From sequence record ON529855.1: a DNA stretch of 64,000 bases, one strand, 5' to 3'. Numbering within the stretch: position 1 is the first letter of the stretch; every line of letters begins with the position of its first letter. The notes beneath the pieces were generated by a model, which was given only the letters and a program-made list of their open reading frames with translations, searched no databases and was not told the origin of the DNA. A program made the position numbers and the translations under genes. Below, piece after piece: positions 33,336 through 42,279 of this stretch.

Positions 33336-36314
33336 GTGGCCCACATCGACTATGAGAACAACCTGTTTCTCGGACGCGGCACGTTCGAGGAGCGGGAAAT
33401 CTTCCGTGATGTCCTGGGCAAGTTCCAGGGCTTCACCTTCTCCAAGGAATACGGCTGCTGGACGACCGGCGACGTCGTGATGGCCCAGGCGGTCAAGGGC
33501 GTGGTCTGGACCGACCGCGCCATGGCGCGTCTGCGCACCCTGCTGGAAGCCGCCAAGATCAGCGAAGAACTGTCGTGGCGATCGGATACGACCTATGTGC
33601 CGCCGTCGCCGCCGGGGTTGAGTTACCTCCCCTACCAGCGCGCCGGCATCGAATACGCACTGATGCGCAAGGACACGCTGATCGCCGATCAGCCCGGCCT
33701 GGGCAAGATGGCGAGCGTCAATACGCCCGTACTAACCCCGTCTGGGTGGCGCCGTATGGGCGATCTGGCCGTGGGTGACGACGTGATCGCCGTTGATGGT
33801 CAGTCCACGCGGGTCATCGGGGTCTATCCCCAAGGCATTCTGCCAAACTATCGGGTTCGATTCCGGGACGGCACGACGACCAACTGCGGCGCCGACCATC
33901 TCTGGGCCGTCGGAAGCCCGACGCGTCGAAACCGCGCAAAAGCGATGGGCAGGCCAGACTACGAATACACGGTCAAGTCCCTGCAAGAACTGATGGACGG
34001 CGGGCTCACCTCGTCTCCCGACGGCGTCCGCGTGGGGGCGAAATGGTATGTGCCTCTGGTCGAGCCGGTCGCGCACCCCGCGCGGGACCTGCCGATCGAC
34101 CCCTACATTCTCGGCGTTCTCCTGGGCGACGGCGCCTTGACCTCCTGCGGCACCGGGTTCTCCAACCCGGACATCGACGCGGACATTCGCGACGAAGTCT
34201 CACGGCGCCTGCCCGACGGCTACCACCTGCGCGTGGACCGATCTTCGGGCTGCCCGCGCGGCATGATCGTATCGGAGACGCACAAGGTTCACGCGCTCAA
34301 GGCCGCGCTCCGTGACCTGGGGCTGAACGTCCTCAGCGGCGATCGCTTCATCCCTGAAGGCTATATCCTCGCCTCCGTCGAACAGCGGCTGAGCCTGCTG
34401 CGCGGGCTCATGGATACGGACGGCTCATCGAGCGGAAACCGGATCGCCTTCCACACGACGTCGCCCAGGTTGGCGGCGGGGGTGGCCGAACTCGTCCGCT
34501 CGCTGGGAGGCGTAGCGATCGAACGGTGGTATGACCGCGAGGCTGAGGGTAAGCCTGCCGAATGTCAGGTCAACGTGAAGATGGCGATCTGCCCCTTCTT
34601 CGCACGACGCAAGGCCCGCAACTGGTCACCCCAAAACCCGCGCCGATACATTCATGCCGTTGAGCGGATCGAGGACTGCGAGCAGGTCTGCATCGCGGTC
34701 GATCACCCTCGCCGGCTCTATGTCGCCGAGCACTACATCGTCACGCACAACACGATTCAGGCGATCGGCGTCCTGAACGCTGACGAGACCATCAACAGCG
34801 CCCTGTTCATCGTACCGGCCTCGCTGAAGATCAACTGGCACCGCGAGATCGACAAGTGGATGCTGCCCAACCTGACCTTCGGCATCGCCGAGGCCAAGCG
34901 GATCGACAAGGAGTTGATCGGTTACGCCAAGGCCTATGAATATGTCGAGGACGGGGTCTACAAGACCGGGGCCAAGGCGGGCCAGCCCAAGTTCAAGAAG
35001 GTCGAGGTCCAGGGCAAGCCCAAGTATCGCAACGTCGAGACGTCCGACTACTGGCCCGACACCGACGTCGTCATCATCAACTACGACATCCTGGAGCGCT
35101 TCGCGGTCCAGATCAAGGAACGCAACTGGGATTACCTAGTCTGTGACGAATGCCATGCGCTGAAGAGCGCCGCCACCGGCCGCACCCTGTTCGTCCTCGG
35201 CGGAAAGCAGGAGTTCAACAAGGCCCAGCGCGACAAGCGCAAGGCCGAAGGCCTGTCGTCGCGACCGATCTGGCATCGCGCCATCGACGCCAACCGTCGC
35301 GTCTTCCTGTCCGGCACGCCGATGATGTCGCGGCCGGTGGAGTTGTGGCCCGTCGCCCACGCCTTCAACCCCTCCGACCTGGGTCGCGACTATGTCGACT
35401 TCGCCTACCGCTACTGCGCCGCCTGGACGACCGCCTACGGTCTGGACGTTTCGGGCGCCTCGAACCTGGAGGAGTTGGGCCAGAAGGCCCGCGCCAGCTT
35501 CATGGTGCGCCGGCTGAAACGCGAGGTGCTGCCGGAACTGCCGCCCAAGCGCCGCATCGTCGTCACCTTGGATAGCCCTGAAATCCGCGAACTGGTCGCC
35601 CGTGAAGACGAACTGGCCCAGGCGTTGCGCCTCTACGAGAACGTCACCCTCAACAAGGGCGTGGTGGTCGACGAGATCAACCACGGCATCCAGATCGTCA
35701 ACCACATGACGCGGATGGGGATGACGGACGAGTTCGATCCCGACAATCCGAACTGGCGCTCGCTCGACCTCGACTACGCCGCCTCGGTCGCCGGTCTGGA
35801 GCCGCCGGCCGTCGCCATCCTGTTCGAGGAAATGGCGAAGGTGCGCCGCGATCTCGGGCTCGCCAAGCTGAGCGCGCTCAAGCCGTGGATGGATGACTTC
35901 CTGGAGGGCGGCGAGAAGCTGCTGATGTTCGCCTACCACTCCGACGTGGTCAAGGCGCTGGCCCTGGCGGCCGAGAAGTGGAACCCGGCGGTGATCTGGG
36001 GCGGCACGCCCCTGCACAAGCGCCAAGGCGAGGTCGACAAGCTGCAAGGCGACGAAAGCTGCCGCCTGTTTATCGGCAACATCCAGGCGGCCGGCGTCGG
36101 CTTCACCATGACGCGCGCCCATGACGTCGCCTTCGCCGAGGGCGACTGGGTGCCCAGCCAGATTGAGCAGTGTGAGGACCGCGCCTGCCGCATCGGCCAG
36201 ACGGCCGAGAAGATCAACAGCTACTTCCTGGTCGCCAACGGCTCGCTCGATTCCCGCATCGCCCAGGCCGCCAAGGCCAAGGAAGACAACATCAACCTGG
36301 CGATGGGGGCGTGA
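33336..36314 (+). CDS. SNF2-family helicase containing an intein
   Basis: Extein join DQPGLGK|TIQAI (motif I), DECH, LSGTP, HelicaseC GVGFTMT and QCEDRACRIGQ. Confidence 0.93.
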   Translation: MAHIDYENNLFLGRGTFEEREIFRDVLGKFQGFTFSKEYGCWTTGDVVMAQAVKGVVWTDRAMARLRTLLEAAKISEELSWRSDTTYVPPSPPGLSYLPYQRAGIEYALMRKDTLIADQPGLGKMASVNTPVLTPSGWRRMGDLAVGDDVIAVDGQSTRVIGVYPQGILPNYRVRFRDGTTTNCGADHLWAVGSPTRRNRAKAMGRPDYEYTVKSLQELMDGGLTSSPDGVRVGAKWYVPLVEPVAHPARDLPIDPYILGVLLGDGALTSCGTGFSNPDIDADIRDEVSRRLPDGYHLRVDRSSGCPRGMIVSETHKVHALKAALRDLGLNVLSGDRFIPEGYILASVEQRLSLLRGLMDTDGSSSGNRIAFHTTSPRLAAGVAELVRSLGGVAIERWYDREAEGKPAECQVNVKMAICPFFARRKARNWSPQNPRRYIHAVERIEDCEQVCIAVDHPRRLYVAEHYIVTHNTIQAIGVLNADETINSALFIVPASLKINWHREIDKWMLPNLTFGIAEAKRIDKELIGYAKAYEYVEDGVYKTGAKAGQPKFKKVEVQGKPKYRNVETSDYWPDTDVVIINYDILERFAVQIKERNWDYLVCDECHALKSAATGRTLFVLGGKQEFNKAQRDKRKAEGLSSRPIWHRAIDANRRVFLSGTPMMSRPVELWPVAHAFNPSDLGRDYVDFAYRYCAAWTTAYGLDVSGASNLEELGQKARASFMVRRLKREVLPELPPKRRIVVTLDSPEIRELVAREDELAQALRLYENVTLNKGVVVDEINHGIQIVNHMTRMGMTDEFDPDNPNWRSLDLDYAASVAGLEPPAVAILFEEMAKVRRDLGLAKLSALKPWMDDFLEGGEKLLMFAYHSDVVKALALAAEKWNPAVIWGGTPLHKRQGEVDKLQGDESCRLFIGNIQAAGVGFTMTRAHDVAFAEGDWVPSQIEQCEDRACRIGQTAEKINSYFLVANGSLDSRIAQAAKAKEDNINLAMGA
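33708..34751 (+). mobile_element. class 3-type intein with LAGLIDADG homing endonuclease (348 aa)
   Basis: Starts with Met after PGLGK; block B NCGADHLW; LAGLIDADG-like LGVLLGDG and LRGLMDTDG; block F QVCIAV; ends VTHN before Thr+1. Confidence 0.9.
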
Positions 36315-37186: not shown

Positions 37187-37273
37187 TGGAGGTGCGACCT
37201 GGACTCGAACCAGGATGAGGGTTTCCCCTACGGCTTATGAGGCCGCTGCCTATTCCAGCCGCGCCACCGCACC
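37187..37273 (-). tRNA. tRNA with CAT anticodon, long variable arm and U73 (Met/Ile2 identity uncertain)
   Basis: GGTGCGG acceptor stem; GCGGC-CTCATAA-GCCGT; V-arm AGGG-GAAA-CCCT; CCTGG-TTCGAGT-CCAGG; encoded TCCA end. Confidence 0.85.
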
Positions 37274-37894: not shown

Positions 37895-37974
37895 TAGGCC
37901 CCTCTCCTGAACGGGCCGCCGTGCTCTGGCGGGGGTCCGTCGTCATCGCCGCCGGCGTCCGCCTGCGAGAGTAA

Positions 37975-38312
37975 AGTGGGGAACTTTCTGTTCCAAGGCC
38001 CGGCAAGCCGGGGTTCCCCATACCCGTGGTCGCCCTTAGGCGGCCAGGAGGACTCGTTCGCCAGCGGCGAAGTTGTCGTTGGAAGCTTCGACAGTTGTCA
38101 AAGTTGGATCGTGAGCGGCCGAAACCGCCATGCAGACCCTAGCACTCGCCATTCAATCCCGTCACCAACGTCAATCGATACTGTTCGGCCCCTCAAACCG
38201 CGCCCGTCTCCCATCATAGGAGGGGGATTGGTGGAGCCGACGGGATTCGCACCCGTGTCTTGCCCGTCTGTTTCGTTCTCTCTGCTTCGGACCGAAGTCC
38301 TCCGCGCGACGA
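37975..38312 (-). ncRNA. ssrA: tmRNA, circularly permuted two-piece form
   Basis: Acceptor piece ends CGGCTCC-A-CCA at 38229; 36-nt spacer; coding piece starts GGGGCCG at 38192 (G3:U70); tag frame ...SNDNFAAGERVLLAA-stop (38036-38083); outer ends approximate. Confidence 0.9.
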
Positions 38313-38318
38313 AATGCC

Positions 38319-38347
38319 TGTATACAGAGTCCGTTTTGGAGTGTCAA
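38319..38347 (-). promoter_or_regulatory. sigma70 promoter of tmRNA
   Basis: TTGACA-N17-TATACA immediately upstream of the acceptor piece. Confidence 0.75.
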
Positions 38348-38366
38348 GGATTACGTCAAAGATTTT

Positions 38367-38453
38367 TGGAGGGACGGGTGAGAATCGAACTCACGCCAGG
38401 CTTTCGCCAGGAGGATTTGCAGTCCCCCGCCTTACCACTCGGTCCACCGTCCC
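38367..38453 (-). tRNA. tRNA-Cys (GCA) with long variable arm
   Basis: GGGACGG/CCGTCCC acceptor, GGGGA-CTGCAAA-TCCTC, V-arm GGC-GAAA-GCC, T-loop TTCGATT, U73 and CCA. Confidence 0.9.
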
Positions 38454-38463
38454 CTGGCATCGA

Positions 38464-38598
38464 TCTGGAAAGGGGTACCCGCCCGTGCCCGCCGCAGGTC
38501 CCGTGGTCGGTCCCGGCGGCGTCAGGGTTTCACGGCCCCAGGTCGACCCGCTCCCGTGATAGAGGGCGATACGCTGCGGGCGGGCTCGCCTTTCCAGA
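38464..38598 (-). ncRNA. unidentified stem-loop RNA (about 135 nt)
   Basis: Terminal stems TCTGGAAAGG/CCTTTCCAGA and CCCGCCCG/CGGGCGGG; lies between promoter and tRNA-Cys. Confidence 0.5.
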
Positions 38599-38658
38599 CG
38601 AAAAGGACCGCCCTGTTGCACTCCCCGGAGGGATCGTGTGACGGCCCGTGACCCTCGT

Positions 38659-39570: not shown

Positions 39571-39574
39571 ACGC

Positions 39575-39610
39575 AAGAGCCCCGACCGATCACTCGGTCG
39601 GGGCTTTTTC
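39575..39610 (+). terminator. intrinsic terminator
   Basis: AAGAGCCCCGACCGA-TCAC-TCGGTCGGGGCTTTTT. Confidence 0.85.
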
Positions 39611-40560
39611 TCGCGCCATCGTCTGTGTCTCGGCCGGCGCAGCGTCAGAAGGGTGTGTCGCGAGACCTCCGTCGCGGTCCCAGGGCACTGGGGCTCCCTG
39701 GAACAAACCTCACCTGAACGTGGCTTTCCTCCCCAAGGGGCTGAAGGTGGCGGGGTCCAGGCGACCCTGTGGGGCTCACACGGCAAGGCCTCTTCTCAAT
39801 GCCAGGCATAGAAGTAGGCAGAGAGCATAGGTTCTTCCTACCCTCGTCATTGTCGTGGTCCGTTTTCCGTCTATCACAGCCTCTGGCTGCCGTCACGCCT
39901 GGTTCCCATTTCTAGGACGGCGTTCCCCTCAGAAGACGGGTCCTGGTAGACCGCGTGTGGCTCTTCAGCGCCTGACGGAACTCGACGACGTGGTTGCCGG
40001 CCGTCTGAACTAGCGTCCCCAAGCGCCCCCATGGACATGCCGTAGGGGTGTGGCAGGGTCCGCCCCACGCTGTGTCAGGATATACGACAATGAAGAGGGG
40101 GAGGTCAATACCGCCTCTGGCGGCCGTCACGCCTAATCGTTCGTCTCGGGCGGCGTTCCCGTCAGGCCTGATTGTCCCCGGCCGAGGTTTGTTCGGGGGA
40201 GCGGTGCGGTCAATCACCCCGACTCACGTTCTCTCGTAACCCGACAGCACGGGCTTAAGCGCGCACGAGCGCTGTGATACAGTCACGCGGTGGTCGACCT
40301 ATGGTGAGGTCATCGAGCCCAGTCGCGCAATCCCACCCTGTATGACGGGATTCATGGCTATCGTCAAGGGGTAACGGGCGCTCTCTCCCGGTCACGCCTC
40401 GTCCTGATGTCTCAGCCGGCGTTCGCTTCAGACAGTACGGCAATCTCGGGGCCGTCCCACGCTCCCGCTGTCGTCGGGCCTGTTCCCAGAGGAAGGTCTA
40501 CTCCAGGGCAGTCTGCTCCAGAGGCCAGGTCAGGGCGAACCCTGTGTGCTGCGCCTAAGG
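39600..40560 (-). ncRNA. array of four homologous unidentified structured RNA units
   Basis: Conserved core CTGA-N3-(GAA)CGCCG-NN-YRAG-A-N8-11-GGCGYGA at 39611-39648, 39893-39932, 40127-40165 and 40392-40431; long closing stems; no credible ORF. Confidence 0.65.
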
Positions 40561-40607
40561 ACCTTCAGCAAGATTGAAGCCTACCAGAACAAACCGAAAC
40601 GGGCAAA

Positions 40608-40640
40608 GAAAAACGGCCCCGATCCGAAGATCGGGGCCGC
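40608..40640 (-). terminator. terminator downstream of Ro60
   Basis: GCGGCCCCGATC-TTCG-GATCGGGGCCG-TTTTTCTTT on minus strand. Confidence 0.8.
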
Positions 40641-40697
40641 ATCGTTCTTTACGCGACAGCGTAATTCCGCGAACGGATTACGAATACCCGTATTGGA

Positions 40698-42083
40698 TCA
40701 GCCGCCGACGAGGCCGTCGTCGAACTCCATCGCCTCGACCTCACGGATATAGCGCAGGACGCTCTCCGAGAAGCCGTCGATGTGGACCCATCCGTTGCCG
40801 TAGCCGATGCCATGCGCATAGCTGGCGACGTTGATCATATAGGCCTTGCCGGCCTTGGGCGCCGGCAGTCGCCCGCCGCCCATGCCGCTGCTCAGCGTTC
40901 CCGACGCCTGTTCGTCGGTGATGACGATCAGGCGGTCGCAGGCGAACTGACGGTTCACCACGTCCACGGCCTGGGCCAGGGCGGTGCCCTGGTGCGGCTG
41001 CGAACGGATCACCGCCTCGACGCCCGCCATGCCCTTGCGGGCCGGGACCTCGACCAGACCGTTGGAGAAGGTCACGACGCGCACGTCGCCCGGCAGGATC
41101 GCCGCCAGCGTCGCCGCCGCATCCATCCGGGTCAGGTCCGACTTTCCGGACAGTTTTTGCCGCATGGAGTAGGAGACGTCGACCATGACCACGGTCGAAC
41201 CCTTCAAGGGTTCGGCCTGATCAATCGTCGCCACGAGGGCGTCGTCCAGCGCCCGCTCGAACGAGGGCGCATAACGCGCCGCCGCCGTGAAGCGGAAGGG
41301 CAGGACGCGGTCCGCGCCCTTGCGCGCGCGGATCGCAGCATTGACCAGATCGCGGTCGACGCCGGCCTGATCCATGTTGCGCAGGTTGCGCAGCAGGGCG
41401 AGGTAGCCCAGCTTGCCGTCGGCCAGCAGACGCGTGAACGTCGCCTTCTTGTCGGCGCCGCCCGACAGGGCGACTTCCCAGGTGTCGGGCGCCGTCAGTT
41501 CATTGTCGACCAGCTTCTTGTAGAGGGCCTCGCGGTCGTCGTTCGCCGGCTTGGCGTGCGCCAGGAACAGAACGTCGCGCAGGCGCACGGACTTGGCCCG
41601 GTCGTACTTGGCGATCTGATAGGCGTCGAAGTTGCCGAAGGCCAGCGACAGCCCCTTCTTCACCTGAGCGGACAGCGGCGCCTTCTTGCCGTCGGCGCGC
41701 ACCGGGTTGAGCGCCCAGTAGAGGGCCAGGAACTCGCTCAGTTCATCGGCGCGTTGGATGACGCGGGCGATGGTCAGCGACACCAGGGCCGAGCCGGACC
41801 CGCGTTGGGCCAGAACGACGAGCAGCAGAAGGGGGACGTGACGCAGCTTGGCGTCCTCACGCGCTTCAATCGCGATCTGGGCGAGGGTCTCGACCGGAAC
41901 TTCCTTGGCGAGGCTCTGGATACGGTCGGCGATCGACACGCCGCTCTCGTAGAAATTGTCTTCCCACAGCAGGCAGGACATGACCGACCGGCGCAGGGCC
42001 TGGGTCTTGGTCATCCGATCGGCCGGTGCGCCTTCATGGGTGCGCGCGGTGGTCGTCTTGGGCTTTGCGTTGATCGACGCCAT
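40698..42083 (-). CDS. rsr: Ro60 / TROVE-vWA RNA-binding protein
   Basis: TROVE motifs (CLLWEDNFYE, R...KLRHVP, YQIAKY, TWE..LS, ALLRNLRN, VLPFRF) and vWA MIDAS VDVSYSM...VITDEQ; GAGGAG RBS before ATG 42083. Confidence 0.95.
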   Translation of the reverse strand: MASINAKPKTTTARTHEGAPADRMTKTQALRRSVMSCLLWEDNFYESGVSIADRIQSLAKEVPVETLAQIAIEAREDAKLRHVPLLLLVVLAQRGSGSALVSLTIARVIQRADELSEFLALYWALNPVRADGKKAPLSAQVKKGLSLAFGNFDAYQIAKYDRAKSVRLRDVLFLAHAKPANDDREALYKKLVDNELTAPDTWEVALSGGADKKATFTRLLADGKLGYLALLRNLRNMDQAGVDRDLVNAAIRARKGADRVLPFRFTAAARYAPSFERALDDALVATIDQAEPLKGSTVVMVDVSYSMRQKLSGKSDLTRMDAAATLAAILPGDVRVVTFSNGLVEVPARKGMAGVEAVIRSQPHQGTALAQAVDVVNRQFACDRLIVITDEQASGTLSSGMGGGRLPAPKAGKAYMINVASYAHGIGYGNGWVHIDGFSESVLRYIREVEAMEFDDGLVGG

Positions 42084-42111
42084 AATGGGTCCCCTCCTCG
42101 TCTGGTCAAGC

Positions 42112-42279
42112 GACCAAGAGGTCGGGGAGGAACAAGCACGAGCCCGGTTCATCCGGTGCGTCTACCACTTCCGCCACCTGCACCAGAGATGCAGGCCAGG
42201 ACTTGAACCTGGATACCCTTGACGGGCGCCGGCTCCAGCGAAGTATAGGCTCGTTACGCCATCCCCGACCTCGCGGTCA
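42112..42279 (-). ncRNA. Y RNA (YrlA-like) 1, tRNA-Leu-derived permuted module
   Basis: Long terminal stem; V-arm, T-arm CCAGG-TTCAAGT-CCTGG, capped acceptor CCTGCA/TGCAGG, Leu-like D-arm GCGGAAGTGGTAGACGC. Confidence 0.85.

Follow-up and report, generated by a model that had tools for sequence, protein, structure and literature searches.

A circularly permuted, two-piece tmRNA gene in the giant Brevundimonas phage Domovoi, overlooked by the published annotation

The DNA considered here is a window of 64,000 nucleotides from sequence record ON529855.1, the 352,705 bp genome of Brevundimonas phage vB_BpoS-Domovoi, a member of the Dolichocephalovirinae (the phiCbK-like subfamily). Window positions 37900-38500 correspond to positions 223900-224500 of the record with an identity of 100%, and window positions are used throughout. 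At this locus GenBank annotates two tRNA-Met genes and one tRNA-Cys gene, and the interval between them is empty, with no coding sequence (CDS). This interval contains a complete and conserved gene for transfer-messenger RNA (tmRNA, ssrA) in the two-piece form, which the published annotation has overlooked. The gene occupies one slot in the cluster tRNA-Met / tRNA-fMet / tmRNA / tRNA-Cys, downstream of the gene for an SNF2-type helicase; the other annotated neighbours are hypothetical proteins. It is very probably a genuine tmRNA gene maintained by selection.

The elements of the gene are collected in Table 1. An earlier note, made from the letters of the window alone, had named a promoter, a T-arm, the sequence CGGCUCC-A-CCA, an intervening sequence (IVS) of 36 nt and the strand GGGGCCG with its G3:U70 pair. 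All of these were located on the minus strand, between 38347 and 37975. The gene order is permuted: the T-arm, the acceptor 3' strand and CCA stand upstream of GGGG..., and the IVS lies between them (38256-38186). The acceptor is of the tRNA-Ala type, with a stem of 7 bp, G3:U70, discriminator A and an encoded CCA. The left edge at 37975 is the end of ...CCCCACU, the same end point that the alpha_tmRNA model reaches on host-type tmRNAs; the 3' end was set by this homology, and the ends are predicted ones. The host-type genes compared here and below come from metagenome-assembled genomes (MAGs), one each of Brevundimonas, Caulobacterales and Phenylobacterium. A pattern scan of genome contigs for the host gene gave one Brevundimonas MAG and several genomes of Phenylobacterium and Caulobacterales, B. 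pondensis itself not being among those retrieved. The promoter was not called by a simple scan for the sigma-70 consensus because TATACA is without the final T. Where the pseudoknots PK1 (ahead of the tag) and PK2 (behind it) would lie, there are the well-supported UUCG hairpin at 38129-38114, a possible enclosing stem GGGUC/GAUCC and the 3' stem GGGGAAC/GUUCCCC with a host-like AACAGAA loop.

Table 1. Features of the Domovoi tmRNA gene in window coordinates
Feature	Position	Strand	Sequence or remark	Basis
Promoter-like element	38319..38347	minus	TTGACA 38347-38342, 17-nt spacer, TATACA 38324-38319	Read from sequence
Predicted transcription start	near 38312	minus		Inferred from promoter-like element
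Acceptor piece, ~84 nt	38229..38312	minus		RF04321 and RF01849 alignments
5' hairpin of acceptor piece	38300-38289	minus	GGAC-UUCG-GUCC	Compensatory change among sister phages
Outer P2 strand (tentative)	38285-38281	minus	GCAGA (GCAGA/UCUGC)	
P2a strand, acceptor piece	38266-38260	minus	CGG-G-CAA	
T-arm	38256-38240	minus	ACGGG 38256-38252, UGCGAAU 38251-38245, CCCGU 38244-38240	
Acceptor 3' strand	38239-38233	minus	CGGCUCC, then discriminator A73 at 38232 and CCA 38231-38229	
Intervening sequence (IVS)	38193..38228	minus	Exactly 36 nt; small hairpin CUCC...GGAG inside; removal in maturation predicted	
Coding piece, ~218 nt	37975..38192	minus	Ends ...ACU at 37975	
Acceptor 5' strand	38192-38186	minus	GGGGCCG; 7/7 pairs with CGGCUCC, G3:U70	
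D-loop analogue, coding piece	38185-38175	minus		
P2a strand, coding piece	38174-38169	minus	UUG-ACG	
UUCG-capped hairpin	38129-38114	minus	GGCGGU/GCCGCU	Pairing-preserving substitutions
Resume hairpin (tentative)	38086..38103	minus	CUUUGAC-AACU-GUCGAAG; positions -4 to -1 in loop, resume codon starts 3' strand	
Tag reading frame	38036..38092	minus	GUC resume, 18 codons in all, stop UAA 38038-38036	ARAGORN -ps95 and context homology
3' domain stem	38019-38013 / 37984-37978	minus	GGGGAAC/GUUCCCC; loop motif AACAGAAA	

The Rfam model RF04321 (tmRNA_permuted) matches positions 38291-38036 with 60.2 bits, its gathering score being 47 (E 3.7e-9 for the whole 64-kb window), and gives 57-60 bits in all six sister phages described below. 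The margin over the gathering score and the recurrence of the match in the sister phages place the Domovoi tmRNA beyond chance. The claim of the earlier note that the phage encodes a circularly permuted ssrA of the alphaproteobacterial type, with a tag of its own, is borne out. ARAGORN at a threshold of 95% (-ps95) calls a permuted tmRNA at 37945-38325 with the tag VEASNDNFAAGERVLLAA, flagged as below threshold ('tmRNAp').

The tag section of the gene reads ACU GUC GAA GCU UCC AAC GAC AAC UUC GCC GCU GGC GAA CGA GUC CUC CUG GCC GCC UAA, and the encoded tag is VEASNDNFAAGERVLLAA, 18 residues ending in LLAA-UAA. It has the features expected of a tmRNA tag: the context of the resume codon is A-rich and conserved, the frame is closed by a stop, and the last residues are a hydrophobic one and Ala-Ala. 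The frame and the stop are those proposed earlier. However, the tag does not begin with the Thr then placed in brackets, which is the -1 triplet. The position of the resume codon, left open at that time, resolves by comparison of sequences to the Val codon GUC at 38092-38090, because its context ACAACU-GUC is homologous to that in 14 other phage genes and in host genes and because ARAGORN makes the same call. In fact, A(A/C)U-GUC is found at the homologous point in 15/15 phages of the subfamily, and a Caulobacterales host gene reads ACAACU-GCG there. The codons GCU and UCC were also considered and were rejected on the same grounds. The GCA of the Rfam consensus aligns to UCC solely because the model aligns on AACGACAAC. 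Among the sister phages GCU changes to GCA, UCC changes to CAC (Ser to His), and there is no frameshift; the first change is synonymous, which places the GCU codon inside the frame. The tags of Kabachok, Marchewka and Bambus accordingly begin with VEAH. The peptide appended to a stalled product is predicted to be A-VEASNDNFAAGERVLLAA. As had been proposed, the tag is longer than the host type and different from it, with 18 encoded residues against 13 in the Brevundimonas MAG (ANDNFAGDVALAA).

The corresponding tags of other phages of the subfamily are VNDNDAPVMEQRLAA in CcrPW, VNDNDAPVMEQLLAA in Colossus, VASNDNDVVAYASAREAIAA in CcrBL10, VNASNDNDVVVSTMTSVKLAA in RB23, VAANDNAPFAVREAIAA in both Rogue and Bajun, and VAANDNDVVAFASAREAIAA in phiCbK. 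Every one of the subfamily tags has a stop codon and a C-terminus composed of a hydrophobic residue and Ala-Ala. In 101 alphaproteobacterial genome loci, fetched for tags of the NDNF type, ARAGORN called 85 tmRNAs; the first tag residue is Ala in about 80 of them and Val in none. Resumption at Val has been described in Helicobacter pylori, where the codon is GUA, and both GUA and GUC are functional in the E. coli tmRNA (PMC2862035). Short-pattern scans of viral metagenome contigs in IMG/VR, filtered by ARAGORN, returned among the matches listed about ten further permuted tmRNAs with a Val resume codon, for example with the tags VNDNDEVLRLAA, VASNDNYVMGTELQAA and VAANDNNVDLALAA, host flanks and phage-encoded genes not being distinguished in these contigs. 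The Val-resume lineage extends beyond the cultured phiCbK-like phages, with the reservation that the contigs may include host flanks. Most of the matches listed in these resume-site scans were unrelated DNA, and no tmRNA of the Domovoi type was found among them. A generic pattern for permuted tmRNA gave 61 ARAGORN-positive viral contigs, many of them possibly host flanks of prophages, and no figure for prevalence was drawn from them.

The resume codon may also be presented by a hairpin (Table 1). All 7 of its 7 pairs form in Domovoi, a result reached by 7 of 2000 shuffled sequences. The hairpin has 7/7 pairs in RB23, 6/7 in CcrPW, CcrBL10 and Bajun, and is weaker in Rogue and phiCbK; it is absent from the three host-type tmRNA genes examined. 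The outermost pair shows covariation in Rogue, CcrBL10 and phiCbK, where the third base of tag codon 2 varies synonymously and its partner changes with it (GCU, GCA or GCC with A, U or G).

Six more phages of B. pondensis carry the tmRNA gene: Papperlapapp, Kabachok, Marchewka, Bambus, Gurke and Kikimora. The mature pieces are 96-100% identical across the seven phages of the Domovoi group, and the few substitutions in them preserve pairing. The hairpin at the 5' end of the acceptor piece shows a compensatory change of A-U to U-A (GGAC-UUCG-GUCC to GGUC-UUCG-GACC). In the hairpin GGCGGU-UUCG-GCCGCU, U.G changes to C-G and C-G to U.G, while in Marchewka and Bambus an insertion of 2 nt gives this UUCG hairpin exactly one more C-G pair. 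In all seven phages the promoter hexamers are kept (with TTGACT at -35 in Gurke and Kikimora), and the spacer between them is variable. The spacer between CCA and GGGG is 36 nt long in five of the seven phages and is replaced by an unrelated sequence of 126 nt in Gurke and Kikimora, between flanks that remain about 97-100% identical. Such a swap between conserved flanks is the pattern expected of an IVS that is discarded.

The length of the IVS varies further among the genes compared. It is 27-31 nt in the host-type genes and 81-104 nt, with a long closing stem, in the Caulobacter phages. Between the 126-nt IVS of Gurke and Kikimora and the 118-nt IVS of Bajun, which infects another host species, the identity is 73%. 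The short, host-like spacer of 36 nt is confined to the clade of Domovoi, Kabachok and Marchewka, and within the phage lineage the long, structured form of the spacer looks like the ancestral one.

Eight further Dolichocephalovirinae have a permuted tmRNA gene: phiCbK, Magneto, Rogue, CcrBL10, RB23, CcrPW, Colossus and Bajun. The order tRNA-Met, tRNA-fMet, tmRNA, tRNA-Cys recurs in CcrPW, Colossus, CcrBL10, Rogue and RB23; in Bajun, phiCbK and Magneto, for which shorter stretches were examined, tRNA-Met adjoins the tmRNA. RF04321 gives 90.4 bits for CcrPW and 83.8 bits for Colossus. ARAGORN calls the tmRNA in CcrPW, RB23 and Bajun, and the other genes of the subfamily were found by anchor search. 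A sequence TTGACA-N17-TA... stands upstream of the tmRNA in CcrPW, Colossus, CcrBL10, Rogue and phiCbK as well. Judged by sequence and gene order, the Domovoi gene is the orthologue of a gene kept at one syntenic position throughout the phiCbK-like Dolichocephalovirinae.

It is useful to compare the paired regions of these genes directly. The comparison covers 15 phage genes from at least six lineages and the three host-type genes. Across the 18 genes no pairing is lost at any of the 15 base pairs that make up the acceptor stem, T-stem and P2a (15/15), and G3:U70 is invariant in 18/18. Double-sided changes are found at acceptor pair 5:68 (C-G or G-C, giving GGGGCCG/CGGCUCC or GGGGGCG/CGCCUCC), at T-stem pair 1 (A-U, G-C, C-G or U-A), at T-stem pair 2, and in P2a (CAA/UUG, CUG/CAG or CCG/CGG).

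The earlier note had found no gene for SmpB in the window, and this holds more widely. A tblastn search with E. coli SmpB (E <= 0.01) gave no SmpB in the window or in any Brevundimonas or Caulobacter phage record; the search covered 50,697 phage records, of which 68 matched at this E-value, and it reached SmpBs of Gram-positive type at about 45% identity. Since no phage SmpB was found, the RNA must use that of the host. As judged from the sequence, the Domovoi tmRNA must rely on both the SmpB and the alanyl-tRNA synthetase of the host. This reliance fits its acceptor stem, identical to that of the host, and its nearly identical T-arm, and also the near-host sequence of the regions that these two proteins touch.

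These features allow us to propose, with good confidence, that the locus is a working phage ssrA gene for a circularly permuted, two-piece tmRNA. A precursor of about 338 nt (38312 to 37975) would be transcribed from the promoter-like element of the gene. The tRNA-processing enzymes of the host would then cut it, with RNase P cleaving where the coding piece begins (G1) and the 3' end being trimmed at CCA. The 36-nt spacer would be released, and the acceptor stem and helix P2 would join the pieces of about 84 and 218 nt. Charging with Ala, through G3:U70, would fall to the alanyl-tRNA synthetase of the host, and host SmpB and EF-Tu would bring the RNA to ribosomes that have stalled on mRNAs broken or lacking a stop. 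Translation would resume at GUC, adding A-VEASNDNFAAGERVLLAA, and the C-terminal LAA would hand the tagged product to proteases of the ClpXP type. The steps of processing, charging and delivery follow the established biology of tmRNA (reviews PMC3985003, PMC11915505). In Caulobacter, SspB is the adaptor when proteins carrying the ssrA tag are degraded (PMC8138137, PMC9393093), and the tmRNA is degraded by RNase R in a cell-cycle-dependent manner (PMC3985003). The phage copy, beside some 25 phage tRNA genes, may sustain ribosome rescue as host RNA synthesis fails, when the unstable host tmRNA of Caulobacter would not be replaced during infection. Some phages need trans-translation: the plating of Lambda-immP22 falls to about 1e-5 without it (PMC2862035).

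Several observations weigh against this proposal. ARAGORN with default settings rejects the tmRNA gene and returns only the three tRNAs, the permuted tmRNA being called only at the 95% threshold. The alpha_tmRNA model RF01849 gives 47.8 bits, below its cut-off of 50, in a local match limited to the tRNA-like domain (model positions 73-180), while RF04321 passes; with RF01849 the host-type genes reach 199-263 bits. Neither comparison nor constrained cofolding fixed the second stem of either pseudoknot, and cofolding of the two mature pieces gave only tentative pairings in the PK1 region. The gene has no counterpart of the middle P2 helix of the host. Thermodynamic folding of the precursor is no better than that of shuffled sequences (z = 0.18), and the benefit to the phage is inferred only. 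The failure of ARAGORN at its default can be explained by a gene that is real but divergent. The G at position 55 of the T-loop was considered as a phage oddity that might account for it and was set aside, the host Caulobacterales tmRNAs sharing the UGCGA loop. The precursor fold and an RNAalifold prediction for the seven sister genes were also dropped, both being at the level of shuffled sequences, with long-range pairs that took in promoter and trailer sequence.

Some other readings of the gene have to be weighed. It might be suggested that the phiCbK-like phages maintain a phage-specific trans-translation, with a Val GUC presented by a hairpin, longer tags and altered handling of the tagged proteins. 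This is rather unlikely. If it were true, the tmRNA would be a device of take-over and not a spare part, acting for example through different SspB/ClpXP kinetics or through discrimination between phage and host tags. The related suggestion for Domovoi, that a functional tmRNA alters the fate of tagged proteins by its different tag (in the use of SspB, the rate of degradation or the distinction from host-tagged proteins), also appears improbable. The length of the tag, its Val start and the four extra residues VEAS ahead of the host-like NDNFA core could all be read in this way, as could the consistency of GUC in the subfamily (15/15, against 0/85 in the ARAGORN-called alphaproteobacterial tmRNAs) and the resume hairpin, present in phage but not in host genes. 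However, the NDNF core shared with the host and the C-terminal LAA are kept, suggesting the same adaptor and protease route, and no phage adaptor or protease partner was identified.

The RNA could instead act mainly as a decoy or inhibitor: by titrating host SmpB, or in competition with the tmRNA of the host, it would dampen host trans-translation, as has been proposed for the tmRNA of mycobacteriophage DS6A, which consists of the tRNA-like domain (TLD) only (PMC4131195). A molecule with no SmpB of its own, with an acceptor stem identical to that of the host and a nearly identical T-arm, must indeed compete for host SmpB, and a TLD-only molecule inhibits tmRNA in E. coli (PMC4131195, PMC11915505). 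Yet the Domovoi gene has a full coding piece with an 18-codon frame. The tag frame, the conserved resume context, the stop and the degron-like end are kept in 15 phages and would be superfluous in a decoy, and the frame shows within the Domovoi group only one synonymous change and one at a conservative position, with no frameshift. This role is therefore very unlikely.

It is harder still to regard the gene as a decaying relic, an imprecisely excised fragment of host ssrA or an attachment-site copy, without function. tmRNA genes are common sites of prophage integration and ssrA fragments do occur in phages (PMC9004378), and ARAGORN places the gene below its threshold. But both pieces, the promoter and the full tag frame are present; the gene is complete, lies within a tRNA cluster, is only about 77% (tRNA-like domain) and 63% (rest) identical to host-type genes, and has been kept, with compensatory changes, at a single syntenic site in different genera. 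That the region instead codes for protein, in the plus-strand open reading frame (ORF) 37976-38641 (221 aa) or in other overlapping ORFs, can practically be dismissed, for although long ORFs occur on both strands here, spurious ones are expected at 65% G+C, and the frame named has no Pfam match, overruns tRNA-Cys, has no GenBank CDS and is broken by the 2-nt indel of Marchewka and Bambus and by the replaced spacer of Gurke and Kikimora.

A number of other features lie near the tmRNA gene. The flanking 'tRNA-Met' (CAU; 37187-37273, minus strand) and 'tRNA-Cys' (GCA; 38367-38453, minus strand) are each 87 nt long. Their variable arms are long, which gives them a type II shape, the discriminator is U and CCA is encoded; both are conserved with the same synteny in the Caulobacter phages. 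The type II shape in bacteria is normally restricted to tRNAs for Leu, Ser and Tyr. According to the phiCbK genomics paper, no phage of the group has a tRNA-Tyr (PMC3556154).

On the 3' side of the tmRNA, the segment 37730-37974 (minus strand), the ~240 nt that follow its end, is 83.5% identical between Domovoi and Gurke. It is conserved only within the Domovoi group, no more than the genome background, and is probably non-coding, since single-base indels argue against coding; it matched nothing in Rfam, and its predicted fold is not significant (z = -1.4). Domovoi, phiCbK, CcrBL10 and Rogue share a short motif (U/C)UCGCAGG(C/U)GG on the 3' side of the tmRNA, of which CcrPW and Colossus have a variant. 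The SNF2-type helicase (33336-36314, plus strand) has 992 aa, with LAGLIDADG and Hom_end matches at residues 344-397. Its orthologue in Gurke, Kikimora, CcrPW and Colossus has about 645 aa, and an intein or homing-endonuclease insertion in the Domovoi protein is likely. A 484-aa ORF at 40698-42152 (minus strand), 2.4 kb from the tmRNA and annotated as hypothetical, contains TROVE and vWA domains and resembles Ro60/Rsr. Bacterial Ro60 proteins act with Y RNAs that contain tRNA-like modules. An E-value scan with Rfam found no Y RNA in the unannotated 1.1 kb beside this ORF (39571-40697), where a terminator-like hairpin at 39580-39611 (plus strand) is the sole feature found.

The annotation status of the gene has a simple history. 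The genome paper on the Domovoi group reports that ARAGORN was run for tRNAs and tmRNAs, with the remark '(none could be detected)' for tmRNA (PMC10070969), and the phiCbK genomics paper gives tRNAs as the sole RNA elements according to Rfam (PMC3556154). Among about 40 matching GenBank records of Dolichocephalovirinae, only that of Bajun has an annotated tmRNA. The present result corrects the record for seven giant Brevundimonas phages (313-357 kb). It is a case in which the default threshold of ARAGORN misses a divergent permuted tmRNA and the newer Rfam model tmRNA_permuted detects the same gene.

The earlier note overrated the novelty of the find. A 2022 survey of 18,146 phage genomes found tmRNA in 402 and 53 distinct two-piece forms, phages of the same subfamily included; 'Permuted' is the entry given in its Table S1 for phiCbK, Karma, Magneto, Swift, CcrSC, CcrBL9 and CcrPW (PMC9004378). 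In the tmRNA database, 79 sequences are from phages, and a tmRNA has been reported for Caulobacter phage Shash. The Domovoi gene is thus a divergent, unannotated addition to the phage two-piece tmRNAs already catalogued, a correction and not a new kind. Modest additions are the Val resume codon common to the subfamily, the swap of the spacer and the possible hairpin at the resume codon, of which, as far as could be found, there is no earlier description. Throughout this subfamily of large Caulobacterales phages, a tmRNA unaccompanied by SmpB appears to belong to the conserved core, with a Val resume codon specific to the lineage. C. crescentus and phiCbK offer a tractable system, in which the tmRNA is cell-cycle regulated and genetics of ssrA, smpB, sspB and clpX exist, suited to the question of why phages carry a rescue RNA.

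The closest relatives of the Domovoi tmRNA are those of the other Dolichocephalovirinae. They share with it the slot in the tRNA cluster, the permuted order, an own TTGACA promoter and the lack of a phage SmpB, as well as Val GUC after A(A/C)U, the NDN core and the hydrophobic residue with Ala-Ala at the end. The identity is about 77-81% in the tRNA-like domain and 63-67% in the rest. The tag VEA(S/H)NDNFAAGERVLLAA is found only in the Domovoi group. The Domovoi spacer, with 36 nt, is short and host-like against 81-126 nt in the others, and the 5' region of the acceptor piece is longer than in the Caulobacter phages. The Domovoi gene is unannotated and missed by ARAGORN at its default, whereas the tmRNA of Bajun is annotated.

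The functional prototype of the alphaproteobacterial two-piece tmRNA (RF01849) is the ssrA of Caulobacter crescentus (PMC3985003). The Domovoi gene resembles the host tmRNAs of Caulobacterales in its circular permutation and its identical acceptor stem GGGGCCG/CGGCUCC. The T-loop, UGCGAAU in Domovoi and UGCGAUU in these hosts, is of the same type. The D-loop analogue and the layout of P2a (CGG-N-xxx / xxx-ACG with a G.A mismatch) are shared, as are the NDNFA core of the tag and a 3' stem-loop with ...AACAGAA..., ending in CCACU. The differences lie in the longer tag, in the Val resume codon in place of the Ala of alphaproteobacterial hosts, and in the lack of the middle P2 helix and of the long stretch that separates the 3' domain from the stop codon. 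Unlike the alphaproteobacterial ssrA, the Domovoi tmRNA is encoded by a virus and would be reliant on the SmpB of its host. The Domovoi gene is as distant from host-type genes as from those of other phages; it represents an old phage lineage and is no recent capture.

Two-piece tmRNAs are also known from marine phages: the OM43 phage Melnitz, the pelagimyophages HTVC008M and Mosig, and cyanophages (PMC9004378). Like the Domovoi gene, these are permuted ssrA genes that descend from Alphaproteobacteria and are borne by large phages with tRNAs of their own. However, they belong to an unrelated lineage and their tags start with Ala. The Melnitz gene carries a glutamine riboswitch, and none was found at the Domovoi gene, where an Rfam search gave no Y RNA, riboswitch or other family adjoining the tmRNA. 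One-piece tmRNAs are present in the mycobacteriophages of cluster C (Bxz1 and others) and in Bacillus phage G, and the TLD-only tmRNA in DS6A (PMC4131195). All of these share with Domovoi a phage-encoded tmRNA without a phage SmpB. The genes of cluster C and phage G have the standard order and are not permuted, and the DS6A molecule is without a tag frame, whereas the Domovoi gene has one.

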